In this document: in pieces, positions 1-5,983 of the stretch
How positions within the stretch are numbered: position 1 is the first letter of the stretch
How the letters are laid out: every line of letters begins with the position of its first letter
Assembly: GCF_000142905.1 (NCBI RefSeq)
Contig: NW_013657574.1
Coordinates: forward strand, 1 to 5,983
Origin: Thecamonas trahens ATCC 50062
Taxonomy: Eukaryota > Protista > Apusomonadida
Direction of reading: 5' to 3'
Length of the DNA stretch: 5,983 nt
Made by a program: the position numbers and the translations under genes
Notes under the pieces: generated by a model
The model's input: the letters and a program-made list of their open reading frames with translations, nothing else
Told to the model about the DNA's origin: nothing
The model's database searches: none

Positions 1-2
1 AA

Positions 3-20
3 CCCCCCCCCCCCCCCCCC
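3..20 (+). repeat. Poly-C homopolymer (18 nt) upstream of the TBC1D7-like start
   Basis: Read directly; continues as C-rich sequence up to the ATG at 49. Confidence 0.9.
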
Positions 21-48
21 TCCCACCTCCACCCACCCGTTCGTACCC

Positions 49-1695
49 ATGCGGGGCAATAACTTCCGCGCAGGCTTCCTGCGGAAGATGGGCGTACCAG
101 GTACACCCACCACTCCGCCCACCTCGCCGTCGCAGGGAGAGTTCCCGGCTCTGCACCGGCTCGACTTCCCGCCGCCCACGCGGGCGACTGCCGACGACAC
201 GGCACCGTCAGACAACCTCGCACCTCGTGTTGATGATGGTCGTAGTGTGGGCCGGAAGGATCGGGCGCTGGTGCTGCCCATTCTTGCTTCCGCAGAGCTG
301 TCATCGCCGCCGTCCATGCATCTGCCGTCGCCGCCGGCGCTCAACACCCCGACACAGGCCTCCGTCGCTGCTGTCGCGCGCGCCGCCATGCCCGAGCCGG
401 ATCATGGCGGCGCGGTCGGACTTGGCGACTCGGTCGCCGCAGGTACCTCGGTCTCGGCCGCGCTGGCTGCCGGATCGGCCATGGCCTCTCTCTCGGCCTC
501 GGCTGCCGCGGCGCACCAGGCCCACACGCCGCATCACGGCGCCCCCCCTCCGCAACCCGCCCGCAACCTCTCAGTCGCGGCCATCCTCTCGTCCGAGGTG
601 GTTGACACGGATGCACTCCGTGCCGCTGTCGTCCGCTCTGCCGGCGCCCCGCACGAGTTCCGCCCGCTGGTCTGGCGGCTCCTCACCGGCGCGCTTCCGC
701 CGCCGCAAGCTGCTTGGGAGCTGGTGTCTGGGTGCTCGCGGGAGGCGTACAACGACCTCGCTGCGGTTGTCGGCGTTTTGCTTCCGTCCACGTACGCTGA
801 TGTGCTGGACGGGCTTGCCAACTCGCTGCCGCCGCTCGCCTCGGCCCATGCCGGCGAAGAGGAGGACGAGGCCGTGCGGACCATCGCACTGCGCCTCCTC
901 AGAGTCCATGCCACCGCCGGCGCACTCTCGCCGGCATCTACGCCGCGGCCAAACCTCCTCTCGCGACAGTCTAGCAGCGACGGCGATCCCGACGCCGAAG
1001 CCATGCTCGCCGACCTGCTTTTCGCTGACGATCGCGACTCGGACGACGAGGTTGGCGGCTCGCACCTCCTTGCGCCACACGTTGTCTCGGCCTCGTCTCC
1101 ACATGCGCTCTCGCTCCACCATCAGATTGCAGGCAGCCTCGCCTCACACCCACAGAAGCGTAGGTTGGCCCGCCAGGCTGTCCCACCGCTCCCCGCGCTC
1201 CAGCTCCAGGCCGCAGCCGCGTACCTGACAGCGGCAGTCCTCGACGACGAGGCTGAGGCCTACGCCTGCTTCTCTGGCCTGATGGACCGGGTGCTGGTCT
1301 CGGTCGTCGACGACTACCCTGACTGGCTCGACACCATTGTCTCGCGGCTGAGCGGGCTCCTTACGTCAAAGTCTGCACGGCTTGCCGCCCACTTTGATGA
1401 GCTCGAGCTGGACCTGCACCGACCGGTCTCGGCCTGGCTTGCCTCGCTCTTCCTGGGCACGCTCGCTTCCGACTCTGTCGAACGGCTGCTCGACTGCACT
1501 CTCGCTCTTGGCCCGGACCTGTTTGTGTTCATGTCGTATGCGCTGCTCTACTCGTATACACCCAAGCTGCTCGGCTTCAAGTCGGCGGCCGCGGTCGAAG
1601 CCTTCCTCCTCGCCCTCCCCGCCGACGTGGATGTCTCTGCAGCTATCCGCATGGCGTGCACTATGACTGCCGACAGCGACGAGCCCCATGCATAG
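49..1695 (+). CDS. TBC1D7: TBC1 domain family member 7-like protein (TBC/Rab-GAP fold; TSC complex subunit homolog), 548 aa, with low-complexity insertions
   Basis: ATG (cccATG) after a C-rich tract, open to TAG at 1693-1695. Three blocks match human TBC1D7 as I recall it. NFRAGFLRKMG resembles NFRSVYYEKVG. ILSSEVVDTDALR...FRPLVWRLLTGALPP...REAYNDL resembles ILLKDDRLDTEKL...YRALVWKVLLGILPP...KEQYLDV. WLASLFLGTLASDSVERLLDCTLALGPDLFVFMSYALL...KLLGFKSAAAVEAFL resembles [39 protein letters not shown]...KVMALNSAEKITKFL. No IxxDxxR or YxQ catalytic finger motifs are visible, as expected for TBC1D7. Confidence 0.85.
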   Translation: MRGNNFRAGFLRKMGVPGTPTTPPTSPSQGEFPALHRLDFPPPTRATADDTAPSDNLAPRVDDGRSVGRKDRALVLPILASAELSSPPSMHLPSPPALNTPTQASVAAVARAAMPEPDHGGAVGLGDSVAAGTSVSAALAAGSAMASLSASAAAAHQAHTPHHGAPPPQPARNLSVAAILSSEVVDTDALRAAVVRSAGAPHEFRPLVWRLLTGALPPPQAAWELVSGCSREAYNDLAAVVGVLLPSTYADVLDGLANSLPPLASAHAGEEEDEAVRTIALRLLRVHATAGALSPASTPRPNLLSRQSSSDGDPDAEAMLADLLFADDRDSDDEVGGSHLLAPHVVSASSPHALSLHHQIAGSLASHPQKRRLARQAVPPLPALQLQAAAAYLTAAVLDDEAEAYACFSGLMDRVLVSVVDDYPDWLDTIVSRLSGLLTSKSARLAAHFDELELDLHRPVSAWLASLFLGTLASDSVERLLDCTLALGPDLFVFMSYALLYSYTPKLLGFKSAAAVEAFLLALPADVDVSAAIRMACTMTADSDEPHA

Positions 1696-1731
1696 CACTG
1701 CCGCGCGAGAAGAGGTTAGTATTCTTCATTG

Positions 1732-4021
1732 TTACACCATGCGCACCGAGTATTGAGACCGCGATGGCATGCGGAAAGGCGACGAGGTGCCGTTGCCGTT
1801 GGCAGCAACAGCAAACGGCACCGGATGCGGCGAGACCGCGCGCGGGCGGTGCATGAACCCGCCCGGTGGGCCCGGCGACGGCGATCGCATCCGCCGCGGC
1901 GACATGCCCATAGCACCGGCGTCGATCGACTGCCGCCGGCGCATCATGCCGGCGGGCATCCCACTGGCGCCCATCGGCGCTATCGTCTTGGATGCCGGCT
2001 TGGACGACGCTGTCTGGCGTGGCTGCGACCGCGACCGCTCGCGGTTGGACTGGTCGCGGATCCGCTCGCGGCCGACCCGCTCCGCTCTAGCGTTGTCGCA
2101 CACGTTCTCGTCAGCACCCCCGTCACCAGCCGCTGCTGCGGCTGCGGCTGCCCGCGCAAGCTTGGCCTCGAGCTCGGCACGGACCCGCGCTGCGCGCTCG
2201 GCAGCCGCCACCTCGCGCTCCTTGGCGTGCGCCGCCTTTTCGGCCACGAGCTCCTTAGCCGCGGCCTCGGCCTCGAGCTCCAGCTCGGAGATCTTGGCCT
2301 TTTGCCGGACAATGGTAAACTCGGCTGCGTCGTCTTGCGCGTGCAGCTGCGCCTGCAGCTTCTTGATCTCGGCCTCTTTGGCCTCGGCCAGGTGCTTGTA
2401 GTTGTCCTTGTATGCGCTCTCCATCTCGCGGATGTACGCGTCGTCGAGCCCAATCTGCATGTCTGCAGCCTCGAGGTCCGACTTGGCCTTGTACAGCTCT
2501 GCCTCGACGCCTGCCAGCTTGTCGAGGCACACGTCAAGCAGCCGGCTCCGTGCCGCCGCTGCTGCCGCCGCAACCACCTGCGACCGCTCGTCACCACTTG
2601 TGGCTTCCGGCACTGGTGCAGGCGAACCTGCAGGCACAACCGAGAGCTTGGCTTCCAGCTCGGCGATGGTGGCGTCGCGGCGCTTGACAGCCGCCAACGC
2701 CTTCTTCTTTTTCATCTCGGCCTTGTCGCGGGCAGCGACGGCGGTACGCGACGCGTGGGTCGTCGCCTCGAGCTGCGACTCGAGTGCTACCTTTTCAGCG
2801 TTGACAATCCGGAGCTTGTCGCACAGCTCCTGCACGTTGGGCGCCCCATCCTTGGCCTCCAGCACCTTGTTGGCCGCCATAAGTGACTTGATCGTCTTCT
2901 TGGCCTTGCGCAGCTGCAGCGTGACATCGCCGGCACCCGCGCCTCCACCGGACCCGCCGCTCGCCACCTTTTTCTTGAGCGTCTGCACATACGCCGAGAG
3001 CTTGAGGAACTGCTCGCGGAGGACCGAGAGGTCCGGGCTCTGCTCACCAGAGTTGACTCCGTTGAGGCCGTCGACCGCTGACGCGACGATCGACGCTACG
3101 TTGGCCAGCTCGGAGGAGATGGACGACTCGGGAGCAGACTCCTGAGCCGGCTCACCAGCTGCGGCGCTGGCTGCCTCCAGCTCGGCAATGCGTGTACGCG
3201 CAGTCTCGAGCTCGGCCTTGAGCGCGTGCTCTGCGGCCCGTGCCAAGGCCAGCGACGACTGCGATGAGCACGCTGCCGAGTGCGCGGCCTCGAGCTTGGC
3301 CTTCAGGTCGGCCATGGCCGAGCGGGCGTCCTCGGCCTCGCACTTGAGCTTGTCGTTGGTGTCGTGCAACGACTCGAGCTCGGTGTTGAGCTTGCGAATA
3401 GTGTCCTTGGCGGCACGCGCTGCAGCGTCGGCGGCGTCGGCATCGGCCGAAACCGCTGCGAGCTTCTCATTAGCGTCGAGCATCTCCTCCTGATGCTCGA
3501 GCTTGAGGTCGATCATGGCGTTGGCCTGGGAACGCGCCTCGCGCTCCAACTCGTAAACCTTGTCGTTGGCGGCATCCCGTTCGGCGCGAGCCTCAGTCAG
3601 TGCGCGGCGGACAGCGGCGACGTCCTCCTGGAGCTTGAGACCTGCGGCTCCGGCAACTTCCAGGTCGCGCTTCTGGGCCGCCAGCTTGGCGTCGGCATTT
3701 GCCAGCTTTGTGAGCAGGGCATCGCGCTCGCTCCGCAGCTCGGCTTCCTCCCGCTTGAGCGCCTCCAACTCTTCCCTGTTGTCTGCTGTAGCCGACGTTG
3801 TTGTCGAGTTCATCGAGCCATACGCACTGCCACCAGCCGTTGGCGGCGCTGACGGCGAGCCGTACACAATCGACCCAAACGAGGGCCTGCGGCCCCATCC
3901 AAAGAAGCCTGAGCAAGAGAACAGAAGGGGAGGGGGGCGAGAATGATAAGTCGGTGCATGTGCATGTGGGGGAGGGAAGAACCAAGTGGTGGGGAATGGG
4001 CATGCTCGTCGTCGTACTCAT
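1732..4021 (-). CDS. Long coiled-coil protein of unknown function with a disordered R/S/P/G/M-rich C-terminal tail; proposed join(4021..4018,3908..1732), 726 aa
   Basis: The 711-codon - strand ORF ends in TAA at 1734-1732. It has heptad-like A/E/K/L/R-rich runs (e.g. LEALKREEAELRSERDALLTKLANADAKL) broken by S/G/P linkers. The track start at 3867 is GTG, and the frame continues upstream (GFFGWGRRPSFGSIVYG) to a polypyrimidine+CAG acceptor at 3909. An ATG at 4021-4019 (aagcATG) is followed by A|GTACGA, giving the in-frame start MSFFGWGRR. The fallback start is the ATG at 3813. The coding region is confident; the 5' and 3' ends are less so. Confidence 0.8.
3909..4017 (-). other. Spliceosomal GT-AG intron (109 nt, phase 1) of the coiled-coil gene
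   Basis: On the - strand: ATGA|GTACGAC...ccccttctgttctcttgctCAG|GCTTC. The acceptor has a long polypyrimidine tract, and splicing restores the frame (A+GC = Ser). A competing donor GAC|GTAAGC lies at 4027. Confidence 0.65.
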
Positions 4022-4388
4022 GCTTACGTCGAGTGTGCGCCGTTGCAAAAAGTTTGAATATTTTGTCGCAACGGTCGCCCCCCCCCTCTGGATCACCAGC
4101 AGATTCGTCACCGCCCTCCCCTCGCCCCCTCCCCCCCTCCCCCTCTCCCCGTCTTTCCCCCCTACTTCTCATCAGAGATCACTCCCACCCCTCACCTGGT
4201 TAAAGCTGTAGCGAGCGCAGCTGTGTGGCCGTTGGCGACGCATAGATGTTGTGTTCCGAGACGTGGCAGCTGCCGAGGTGATGACGGGCGTATGGCTGAA
4301 AAAAAGGCAGTGCCCACAAAACGCGCACTCGGACCGGGAGCACATGCAGTGGTGAGAGACTCCCACGCTGGCAGCTGATACATTTGCC
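4022..4388. promoter_or_regulatory. Probable bidirectional promoter region between the divergent coiled-coil and F-box/Sec7/PH genes
   Basis: The 367 nt lie between head-to-head ATGs (4021 - and 4389 +). They include an AT-rich island (4047-4064) within an inverted repeat and a long C-rich tract (4078-4195). Confidence 0.6.
4078..4195. repeat. C/T-rich low-complexity tract with multiple C-runs (G-quadruplex-capable on the - strand)
   Basis: C9 at 4078-4086, then many C3-C7 runs separated by 1-7 nt between about 4114 and 4162. Confidence 0.75.
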
Positions 4389-5735
4389 ATGGCTGCACAC
4401 AATGAAGCCACGCTGCTGGATCTCCCAGCTGAGCTGCTGGTTGAGATAGGCAAGATGCTCGGGGCAGGCGACGTGGCGGCGCTGGCGTCGACGTGCACGC
4501 AACTGGCGTGGCTTGTGCGCGACAACATGGTGTGGCGAGCAAAGTACATCGAAACACTTGGCGATGTGCCACCGATGAGCCGGAGACGGCTCATCGCCGA
4601 CAGCCCGTCCCACTCTTGGGCGGATGAGCTCCGCTGGCGGATCGCGACTCAGCAGACGGTGACCTGCAACTTTAACAAGGCGCCAAGCCTCGACGACGCG
4701 CTCGCGTACCTACAGTCGCTGGCGCTGTTTGATTGCATGGAAAAGGACGATGAGGTTGGTGTCGACACCAAGGTCTTTGACTTTGTCTTTTACACACCGG
4801 GCATTTCCAAGCGTCGTATCGGCGAGCTCCTTGGCTCTGCAACGTACGCGGCTGCGCGCGATTGGTACGTGATGGCGCGGATGCCAGCGCTTGTCGGGCT
4901 CGACTTTGCCGACGCGCTGCGCGATTTCTTGCACCCTCTGTGGATGCCTGGTGAGGCCCAGGCCATTGATCGAATCATGCATACCTTTGCCAAGGCGTAC
5001 TGCAGCGCCAACCCGGAAGTCACGGCCTCGTCAGCTCAGGACGTCGTCATCGACGACAACGGCTTTACCAATCTGCTCACAGTCGACGCAGCGTACGTTC
5101 TCTCGTTCGCCGCCGTCATGCTCAACACCGATGCCCACTCATCGCACACCATCTCGGGCTTTACCCGGTCCTCGTTTGTGCAAAACTGCTCCGGGCTCGG
5201 CGTGCCGCGCGCATTGGTCGAGCACGTGTGGGAGTCGGTCACCTCCAACCCGATCCTTCACGACTCGGACAATGTGCTCTCGCCGCCTCTGGCCACCAGT
5301 GCAGCGCACATCCACACCGGCGGCATGCTCTTTCCCTGGCGATCTCGCTTCCTCATGCTCACCTGCAACAAGCTGCTGATATTCCACAGCGAGGAGAGCC
5401 AAGATCGCGCGCTTGCCAAGTACCCGCACCAGGCGCTCCAAGTCGTCCGCCTCGGCGAGCGTGACATCACCATCGAACCACATCCTGTTGCCGGCTACGC
5501 CACCCTCGATGGCTGGGTCACCAGAACTGGCCTCTTTGCGCGCTCGGATCTCCTCTCCCGATCAACTGAGACTATTGTCCGCATTCGGCTCCCTACGTCC
5601 GACCTCGCCGACAAGTGGGAGCTCCTCATCAATCGTGCCCTCAACACAGCTGTCGTGGAGGACGTATGCGAGCTTGATCCCGCGCGAGACGTTACCGAGG
5701 CCGTCCATAACCATAACCTCATCACCAGCGAGTGA
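4389..5735 (+). CDS. F-box / Sec7 / PH domain protein (Arf guanine-nucleotide exchange factor with cytohesin-like Sec7-PH and an N-terminal F-box), 448 aa
   Basis: Strong Kozak context gccATGG. F-box: LLDLPAELLVEIGKMLGAGDVAALASTCTQLAWLVRDNMVWRAKY (aa ~9-53). Sec7 (~4650-5258): FNKAP, GISKRRIGELLG, GLDFADALRDFL, motif 1 LWMPGEAQAIDRIMHTFAKAYCSANP (Glu189 at 4953-4955), and motif 2 AYVLSFAAVMLNTDAH. PH-like (~5300-5650): TGGMLFPWRSRFLMLTCNKLLIF, with a terminal helix ADKWELLINRAL. Confidence 0.92.
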   Translation: MAAHNEATLLDLPAELLVEIGKMLGAGDVAALASTCTQLAWLVRDNMVWRAKYIETLGDVPPMSRRRLIADSPSHSWADELRWRIATQQTVTCNFNKAPSLDDALAYLQSLALFDCMEKDDEVGVDTKVFDFVFYTPGISKRRIGELLGSATYAAARDWYVMARMPALVGLDFADALRDFLHPLWMPGEAQAIDRIMHTFAKAYCSANPEVTASSAQDVVIDDNGFTNLLTVDAAYVLSFAAVMLNTDAHSSHTISGFTRSSFVQNCSGLGVPRALVEHVWESVTSNPILHDSDNVLSPPLATSAAHIHTGGMLFPWRSRFLMLTCNKLLIFHSEESQDRALAKYPHQALQVVRLGERDITIEPHPVAGYATLDGWVTRTGLFARSDLLSRSTETIVRIRLPTSDLADKWELLINRALNTAVVEDVCELDPARDVTEAVHNHNLITSE

Positions 5736-5774
5736 CGAACAGCGCTTGCCCCGGCGCCAGCATCATACGCCCCC

Positions 5775-5782
5775 GCCAATCA
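5775..5782 (+). promoter_or_regulatory. Putative CCAAT (NF-Y/HAP-type) box GCCAATCA
   Basis: Matches the extended CCAATCA consensus, about 120 nt upstream of the ATG at 5901. Function is not demonstrated. Confidence 0.35.
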
Positions 5783-5791
5783 AACACGTTT

Positions 5792-5851
5792 CCATCGCAC
5801 CTTCTTTCCCCTCTCCCCTGCCATCGCCCCCCATCGCCCATCGCCCATCGC
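5792..5851 (+). repeat. CCATCGC heptamer cluster, 5 copies (5792, 5821, 5831, 5838, 5845; last three tandem)
   Basis: Read directly in the 165-nt intergenic region before the ATG at 5901. Confidence 0.85.
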
Positions 5852-5900
5852 ACGTCGCCGGTCACCGGTCACCACTCGCCAGCCACCACTCGTCTGAACC

Positions 5901-5983
5901 ATGGCCGAGACTCTCCAGGTCCAGCTGGTCTCGCGGTGCCGCGAGCCGGCCCACAGCAAGGTCCCCTCCTCGCTCTTCTCCGT
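5901..5983 (+). CDS. 5' fragment of a gene running off the window (MAETLQVQLVSRCREPAHSKVPSSLFS...); possibly ribosome biogenesis protein WDR12/Ytm1 (N-terminal ubiquitin-like/NLE domain)
   Basis: Ideal Kozak context accATGG after a C-rich tract, GC3-rich codons, and open to the window end. The pattern Q-V-x-hydrophobic-x-S/T ... V-P/D-x-x-x-F-S-V/I resembles the Ytm1/WDR12 N-terminus (recalled human [25 protein letters not shown]). Only 27 codons are visible, so the product call is tentative. Confidence 0.55.
   Translation, partial: MAETLQVQLVSRCREPAHSKVPSSLFS

Follow-up and report, generated by a model that had tools for sequence, protein, structure and literature searches.

An F-box, a Sec7 domain, and a PH fold combined in a predicted Arf guanine nucleotide exchange factor of Thecamonas trahens

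Thecamonas trahens is an apusomonad, and the apusomonads are the sister group of the opisthokonts (animals and fungi). The stretch of DNA analysed here (the window) is a complete contig of the T. trahens ATCC 50062 assembly, NW_013657574.1, designated C106; it is 5983 bases long and has a G+C content of 60–73%, and the whole genome comprises 28.7 Mb in 131 contigs. Three prominent long open reading frames (ORFs) were found on the contig, at positions 49-1695 (+), 1732-3867 (-), and 4389-5735 (+). The third of these is the subject of the present work. It is a single unbroken, intronless frame of 448 codons plus a stop, which starts at the first ATG within an open frame of 459 codons, and its predicted product, hereafter the window protein, combines an F-box, a Sec7 domain, and a PH-fold domain (Table 1). 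An identical protein of 448 amino acids is already public (NCBI, UniRef, and EukProt) as a model on the 5983-base contig. The initial annotation of the window had described the gene as a single intronless ORF; this description held, and the orthologue recovered from Tara Oceans is likewise encoded in one ORF.

Table 1. Predicted features of the F-box-Sec7-PH gene and the duplicated part of the window (positions of the 5983-base window; residues of the 448-amino-acid product).
Feature	Position	Strand	Residues	Remarks
F-box	4416..4550	+	10-54	Pfam F-box-like PF12937
Helical linker, F-box to Sec7	4560..4658	+	58-90	Family alignment; AlphaFold2 helices 63-71 and 77-96
Sec7 catalytic domain	4659..5255	+	91-289 (Pfam)	Pfam E 7.7e-32
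Glutamic finger codon	4953..4955	+	Glu189	Within PGEAQ, 4947-4961
Sec7 insertion	5028..5078	+	~214-230	About 17 residues; gap in the Grp1 alignment; family alignment
PH-fold domain	5286..5651	+	300-421	Seven strands and a C-terminal helix with invariant Trp410
Acidic C-terminal tail	5652..5732	+	422-448	Low model confidence; motif E424, V426, P431, A432
Duplicated stretch	4424..5983			Second copy on scaffold C9, immediately after a 484-N gap; 99.4% identity

A HMMER search of 1.84 billion representative proteins yielded 2353 Sec7 matches, among which just two were close relatives of the window protein, designated P0011 and P0012. P0011 (460 amino acids) showed 45% identity in an alignment spanning residues 6-438 (E 7e-113); five or more contigs from marine metagenomes, Tara Oceans among them, carry it as an uninterrupted single ORF. 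Source records of the relatives include ERZ908065 and ERZ2783005 for the Tara contigs and the run SRR30952584. P0012 (528 amino acids), known from a single Logan assembly, was more distant and contained a Sec7 domain together with an F-box-like match (E 0.0019). Outside Sec7, it resembled the window protein both in the N-terminus (residues 1-95, BLASTP, E 3e-9) and in the C-terminus (E 5e-8). The other matches, none stronger than E 1e-21, were to ordinary proteins of the Sec7 or Sec7-PH type, and a Pfam F-box at E ≤0.01 was detected in only two of the 81 proteins scanned, the window protein and P0012 (P0011 reached E 0.045). Word-based searches with single sequences and with the family profile revealed no further F-box-Sec7-PH members, and a scan of JGI metagenomes returned 80 loci, all of them ordinary Sec7 at 26-43% identity and none spanning the F-box. 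No synteny with Thecamonas was detected on the Tara Oceans contig that carries P0011; a WD40 neighbour on that contig is 52% identical to a Thecamonas gene located on another scaffold. The loci of the JGI scan included Sec7-like matches with about 31% identity to residues 72-251/293 on metagenome contigs of 3-40 kb (L049-L053, L063, L064, L073, L076, and L079); three of these contigs are from gut metagenomes, two of the three being labelled human-gut, and the others carry no source label. These could be bacterial RalF-like effectors or could belong to gut protists.

The Sec7 domain is complete and apparently active as an Arf guanine nucleotide exchange factor (GEF). The catalytic motifs PGEAQxIDR and MLNTD are both present, and since PGEAQ lies at 4947-4961, the glutamic finger is Glu189, as had been proposed from the start. 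All six positions that were invariant in 81 aligned Sec7 proteins (R178, G188, E189, Q191, I193, and R195) are retained, and in the near-invariant columns of that alignment the window protein deviates only conservatively. An AlphaFold2 (AF2) model of the 448-amino-acid protein was obtained from an 81-sequence alignment, with a mean predicted local distance difference test (pLDDT) score of 78.5. Residues 79-292 of this model superposed on the ARNO Sec7 domain (1r8q_E) with Z 19.9 and a root-mean-square deviation (rmsd) of 2.0 Å over 185 residues. The insertion of about 17 residues within Sec7 is common to the window protein and P0011 and is missing in cytohesins and P0012. In the phmmer alignment against PDB, the Phe-Ala pair of Sec7 is retained, which we take to mark the brefeldin-insensitive type.

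The F-box extends over about residues 9-57, with helices at 14-24, 26-33, 37-44, and 46-57. The F-box-like family PF12937 scored 24.9 bits on the single sequence, against a cut-off of 24.3, and the six-frame scan of the genome gave 28.8 bits for the F-box of the same gene. Since the single-sequence score was marginal, the F-box was tested by conservation, profile-profile comparison, and fold. The window protein, P0011, and P0012 have the same residue at each of the F-box hallmark positions P13, I20, D28, V29, L39, and W49, at an F-box identity of 35% to P0011 and 31% to P0012, which is near the values for Sec7 and PH. When compared with 20 Thecamonas F-boxes by hhalign, the three-member N-terminal profile gave a probability of 97.3% (P 2.2e-11, 56 columns), and the N-termini of P0011 and P0012 alone gave 96.5% (P 8.6e-10). 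A hidden Markov model (HMM) of the 20 Thecamonas F-boxes was applied to the three family members and to some 155 further Sec7 proteins; it matched the window protein and P0011 only and did not report P0012. A model of residues 1-100 (pLDDT 75.8) was compared with 48,161 PDB representatives in the VIA fold search, and the top four matches were FBXO31, FBXO3, Cdc4, and Fbs2, all of them complexed with Skp1 (Z 7.8-6.4). The top 29 Foldseek matches of the N-terminal model were nearly all F-box proteins, mostly in complexes of Skp1 or of the Skp1-Cul1-F-box (SCF) ubiquitin ligase, at weak E-values (best E 0.065). A search of PDB with the N-terminal profile was dominated by Sec7 matches because the full-length P0012 row had been kept, and F-box chains reached just E 0.3-0.7 there. 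Because conservation, profile-profile match, and fold agree with one another, the predicted N-terminal F-box is, on the combined evidence, a real one. In the linker that joins it to Sec7, residues W77, A78, E80, and R84 are family-specific in the alignment of the three proteins.

The C-terminal PH-like domain was recovered by fold. Residues 300-421 of the model superposed on the ARNO PH domain (1u27) with Z 16.7 and an rmsd of 2.5 Å over 115 of 119 residues; the Grp1 PH domain (1fgy) gave Z 16.4, and TAPP1, CERT, and pleckstrin gave Z 14-15. In the phmmer search of PDB, residues 128-342 aligned to Grp1/cytohesin-3 and so reached the first two PH strands, and the orthologue P0011 had a weak Pfam PH match (E 0.008). 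A sequence profile of the PH region found nothing significant in PDB (best E 0.35, unrelated). For this reason the PH assignment rests on the fold, the Grp1 alignment, and the weak Pfam match of the orthologue, and the predicted domain must be called very divergent by sequence. In the phosphoinositide site, the strand-1 Lys of LxK is replaced by His, and the Arg after Gly-Gly (GGR) by Met (Tyr in P0011); the later R/K-x-R is retained. The acidic tail that follows contains no polybasic stretch.

Taken together, the predicted F-box, Sec7, and PH domains are conserved as a unit in three lineages, namely T. trahens and two uncultured protists, and the window protein, P0011, and P0012 are best read as a small, lineage-restricted Arf GEF subfamily. 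In the literature we found no paper describing an F-box-Sec7-PH protein and no paper mentioning Thecamonas together with Sec7. The architecture is an undescribed and rare one among Arf GEFs, and the sequence itself is already public.

The 3' part of the window is present twice in the assembly. The second copy lies at G000:C9:252309-253873 (L008:6309-7873), at the right-hand edge of the gap in scaffold C9, and differs from the window copy at nine positions, of which seven, including five 1-base insertions in C9, lie between 4446 and 4503. The F-box sequence is present in C9 from residue 12 on, with its frame broken by the insertions in the first 80 bases. Because these insertions beside the gap break the frame, the public C9 gene model (386 amino acids) begins at Met63, and the F-box is hidden; the intact 448-amino-acid model was found only on the small contig C106. 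Window positions 1-4380 had no second copy anywhere else in the genome, so C106 probably fills the gap in C9. As judged from the sequences, the F-box-Sec7-PH layout is no assembly artefact, because Tara Oceans metagenomes contain a full-length orthologue of 45% identity whose ORF is unbroken. The case shows an assembly gap concealing the F-box in the gene model of a main scaffold.

A single Skp1 gene was found in the Thecamonas genome, at L010:1477-1986 (-), and its translation is identical to the T. trahens ATCC 50062 protein XP_013763140.1. The genome also contains four or more cullin loci, no fewer than 81 F-box matches, and 15 Arf-family loci. Six distinct Sec7 genes were found: three canonical Sec7-PH genes, one BIG, one GBF-like gene, and the F-box-Sec7-PH gene at 4389-5735, which is the only one of the six near an F-box match. 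Its predicted Sec7 domain is by far the most divergent, with a Pfam Sec7 score of 113 bits versus 207-247 bits for the other five (210-247 for the canonical Sec7-PH genes). A second link between the F-box and the Arf system was observed elsewhere in the genome, with the F-box joined to the GTPase itself. It is encoded at G000:C29, about 153500-156937 (+) (L096:3-3434), in one open frame of 1291 amino acids, 1144 of which were scanned; the frame contains Kelch repeats, an RCC1-like propeller, an F-box-like match (32.9 bits, residues 850-892), and an Arf-family GTPase (E 3.8e-23, residues 977-1141).

Among the known Arf GEFs, the cytohesins (ARNO and Grp1) share with the window protein a Sec7 domain followed directly by PH; they provided the best sequence match (2r0d, E 7.5e-18) and the best structure matches as well. 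Unlike the cytohesins, the window protein has an F-box instead of the N-terminal coiled coil, lacks the C-terminal polybasic region, and carries altered phosphoinositide residues and the 17-residue Sec7 insertion; in addition, the three canonical Sec7-PH genes of Thecamonas all encode a far less divergent Sec7 domain. The likeness to IQSEC/BRAG proteins lies in packing. The Sec7-PH pair of the AF2 model superposed on the tandem of the BRAG2/IQSEC1 crystal structures with Z 19.1-19.5 and an rmsd of 5.6-5.9 Å over 288-294 residues, and on autoinhibited Grp1 with an rmsd of about 18 Å. The window protein differs from the IQSEC/BRAG proteins in having no IQ motif and no Pfam IQ_SEC7_PH match, and their sequence scores were below those of the cytohesins (in the phmmer search of PDB, 58 bits for ARNO Sec7 versus 40-44 bits for IQSEC1/2). 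The long relatives that were scanned were of the cytohesin type, the ankyrin-Sec7-PH type, or BIG, and none had an IQSEC-type domain. A further parallel is offered by the ankyrin-repeat cytohesins (ARCC) and the TBC-Sec7 proteins (TBS), in which protist lineages have extended a cytohesin-type Sec7 protein by a new module at one terminus or the other (PMC6727740; PMC553965). Such proteins were among the best Sec7 matches of the window protein, in which the added module is an F-box.

The animal protein FBX8 (FBXO8) likewise has an N-terminal F-box closely ahead of Sec7, whereas the window protein, which is from an apusomonad, has a PH domain after Sec7 and a full set of catalytic Sec7 motifs. 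FBX8 has been described as metazoan-only and has not been reported from sponges or placozoans (PMC6727740); it lacks the C-terminal domain and branches within IQSEC7 with weak support of 0.82/50/92 (PMC6727740; Pipaliya et al., 2019). It binds Cul1 via Skp1 and ubiquitinates Arf6 without causing Arf6 degradation (PMC2721971). It is reported to lack GEF activity in vitro, the role of its F-box has been called unclear, and it is regarded as the least understood Arf GEF subfamily (PMC6724607). The Arf GEF survey found no other domain combinations in its sampling (PMC6727740), and its main text does not mention Thecamonas. The initial annotation had stated that the window protein matched neither the cytohesins nor FBX8, and this was confirmed, with the three parts conserved in three lineages.

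We consider it reasonably probable that the window protein belongs to a fast-evolving family of cytohesin-type (Sec7-PH) Arf GEFs that gained an F-box. We think it most likely that this fusion and metazoan FBX8 had separate origins, with the fusion as a convergent counterpart of FBX8. Of the two origins that the initial annotation had allowed, an ancestral or intermediate form bearing on FBX8 and an independent fusion, we lean to the second because all near-invariant catalytic positions are kept in the Sec7 domain and FBX8 has been reported as GEF-inactive in vitro, because the sequence resembles the cytohesins more than IQSEC, from which FBX8 is reported to derive, and because the FBX8 cluster fell from rank 2 (0.78) in the ESM Atlas query with the whole protein to rank 24 (0.76) with Sec7 only. 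The F-box lies about 20 residues ahead of Sec7, at the position of the N-terminal coiled coil in animal cytohesins. By docking Skp1, it could bring a Cul1-Rbx1 ubiquitin ligase to the site where Sec7 engages Arf; recruitment of Skp1-Cul1 by the F-box is plausible. The PH domain could place or regulate the protein on the membrane, or could bind Arf/Arl-GTP in the manner of cytohesin PH domains. The most likely outcome would be that Sec7 serves as the substrate-binding arm of the SCF ligase, so that the engaged Arf would be ubiquitinated, as Arf6 is by FBX8, with nucleotide exchange still possible. Alternatively, or in addition, self-ubiquitination by the SCF ligase might make the protein a short-lived GEF.

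A number of points weigh against this interpretation. The start codon at 4389 is a prediction made from the sequence, the single-sequence Pfam score of the F-box is marginal, and a fold Z below 8 is middling for a small helical domain. Membrane targeting through the PH domain is uncertain, because two residues of the phosphoinositide site of cytohesins, the first Lys and the Arg of GGR, are missing from the domain; of the membrane-targeted protein envisaged in the initial annotation, the PH fold stood, and the case for targeting proved weaker than claimed. Skp1 binding, exchange activity, lipid binding, and ubiquitination are all predicted activities. The quick trees based on Sec7 only (the larger with 150 rows, the smaller with 55) contain no FBX8, IQSEC, or EFA6. 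In these trees, the window protein and P0011 formed a pair with a Shimodaira-Hasegawa-like approximate likelihood ratio test (SH-aLRT) support of 98, and P0012 joined the pair with a support of 85 (150 rows) or 71 (55 rows) and a long-branch warning. The branch leading to the family is long, and no position was fixed relative to the cytohesin-type, ankyrin-cytohesin, BIG, and GBF proteins. Given this support and the long-branch warning, the F-box, linker, and C-terminal motifs that the three proteins share are better evidence for monophyly of the family than the tree is. The BRAG2-like packing of Sec7 and PH could hint at an IQSEC-like kinship; the relative placement of domains in a predicted model counts as weak evidence.

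A common origin with animal FBX8 would mean that F-box-Sec7-PH was already present in the apusomonad-opisthokont ancestor, with FBX8 as a descendant that lost PH and catalytic competence and with the gene lost in fungi and in most unicellular relatives of animals. Such an origin is consistent with the identical domain order and the nearness of the F-box to Sec7 in both proteins, and with the established taxonomy, in which apusomonads are sister to opisthokonts. The Atlas models superpose over residues 5-292 with a template modelling (TM) score of 0.64, normalised to FBX8, and by Atlas features the F-box+Sec7 clusters were nearest (0.78-0.79, within the range that the tool itself labels "lead only"). 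In addition, the Sec7-PH arrangement of the AF2 model resembles BRAG2, and the placement of FBX8 inside IQSEC7 is itself weakly supported (0.82/50/92; PMC6727740). Nevertheless, FBX8 was just 24th (0.76) in the Sec7-only Atlas query and was absent among the best 150 of the 2353 Sec7 matches, and F-box fusions are very common in the Thecamonas genome (at least 81 F-box matches). Many losses would also be required, because FBX8 is reported from animals only, and not from sponges or placozoans (PMC6727740). We therefore regard a shared origin as unlikely. If it were true, the wiring of an Arf GEF to SCF would date to the apusomonad-opisthokont ancestor, and FBX8 would descend from that fusion in reduced and catalytically dead form, instead of having arisen in metazoans from IQSEC7.

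Two other explanations concern what the F-box does. It might bind Skp1 outside a ubiquitin ligase and serve membrane recycling in a structural or regulatory role, which would make the protein a Skp1-regulated Arf GEF. The yeast proteins Rcy1 and Skp1 reportedly form a non-SCF complex of this kind (Galan et al., 2001). Rcy1 is an F-box protein of membrane traffic, needed for endosome-to-Golgi recycling (PMC7185969); the comparison is functional only, as Rcy1 has neither Sec7 nor PH. Because the catalytic motifs of Sec7 are intact in the window protein, GEF activity may be its main output. Both SCF and non-SCF use of Skp1 would fit the present data, and the sole characterised F-box-Sec7 protein, FBX8, binds Cul1 through Skp1 (PMC2721971); we consider a role outside the ligase rather unlikely. 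Alternatively, the F-box could be decayed or co-opted and no longer bind Skp1, leaving a divergent cytohesin with a helical cap. The marginal Pfam score in the window protein, the weak F-box-like matches in P0011 (E 0.045) and P0012 (E 0.0019), and the fold Z below 8 would fit such decay. Against decay stand the Leu-Pro, Ile20, Asp28-Val29, Leu39, and Trp49 positions, which are invariant at 31-35% identity of the segment, and the profile-profile match of 96.5-97.3%, and we consider it quite improbable. Lastly, the true product could be the 386-amino-acid model from Met63, with the F-box foreign to it. The F-box is indeed absent from the public model on C9, a large scaffold, and the window is a small unplaced contig. 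However, C9 itself holds the F-box sequence from residue 12, broken by the five 1-base insertions after the gap, and independent metagenome assemblies encode the same N-terminus in frame, with a start matching that of the window protein. An artefact of assembly or annotation is thus largely refuted and very improbable.

Our preferred reading, an F-box gained by a cytohesin-type Arf GEF, concerns one of the three ORFs of the window; the other two are described here. The frame at 49-1695 (+) encodes a 548-amino-acid TBC-type RabGAP-like protein, with a RabGAP-TBC match in its C-terminal half only (E 3.4e-10, profile 98-216). Its N-terminal 200 residues are of low complexity, and the Gln-finger YxQ is apparently missing, as judged by eye. 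This gene lies on the same strand as the Sec7 gene, 2.7 kb upstream of it. Other protists have TBC-Sec7 fusions (TBS), one of which ranked among the top matches of the word search. The frame at 1732-3867 (-) encodes a 711-amino-acid, Ala/Glu-rich coiled-coil protein, for which all Pfam matches were below the cut-off (the CENP-F leucine-zipper region scored 26.8 bits versus 34.5).

In conclusion, F-box-Sec7-PH is an additional layout for the published Arf GEF catalogue, which reported no further combinations (PMC6727740). If it arose independently of FBX8, the window protein would be a second link between Arf activation and SCF ubiquitination, which would suggest that the combination is useful in itself; if it is an older relative, the account of the origin of FBX8 changes. 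Either way, it offers a testable case of one protein that may, at a single membrane, load an Arf with GTP and tag either that Arf or itself with ubiquitin.

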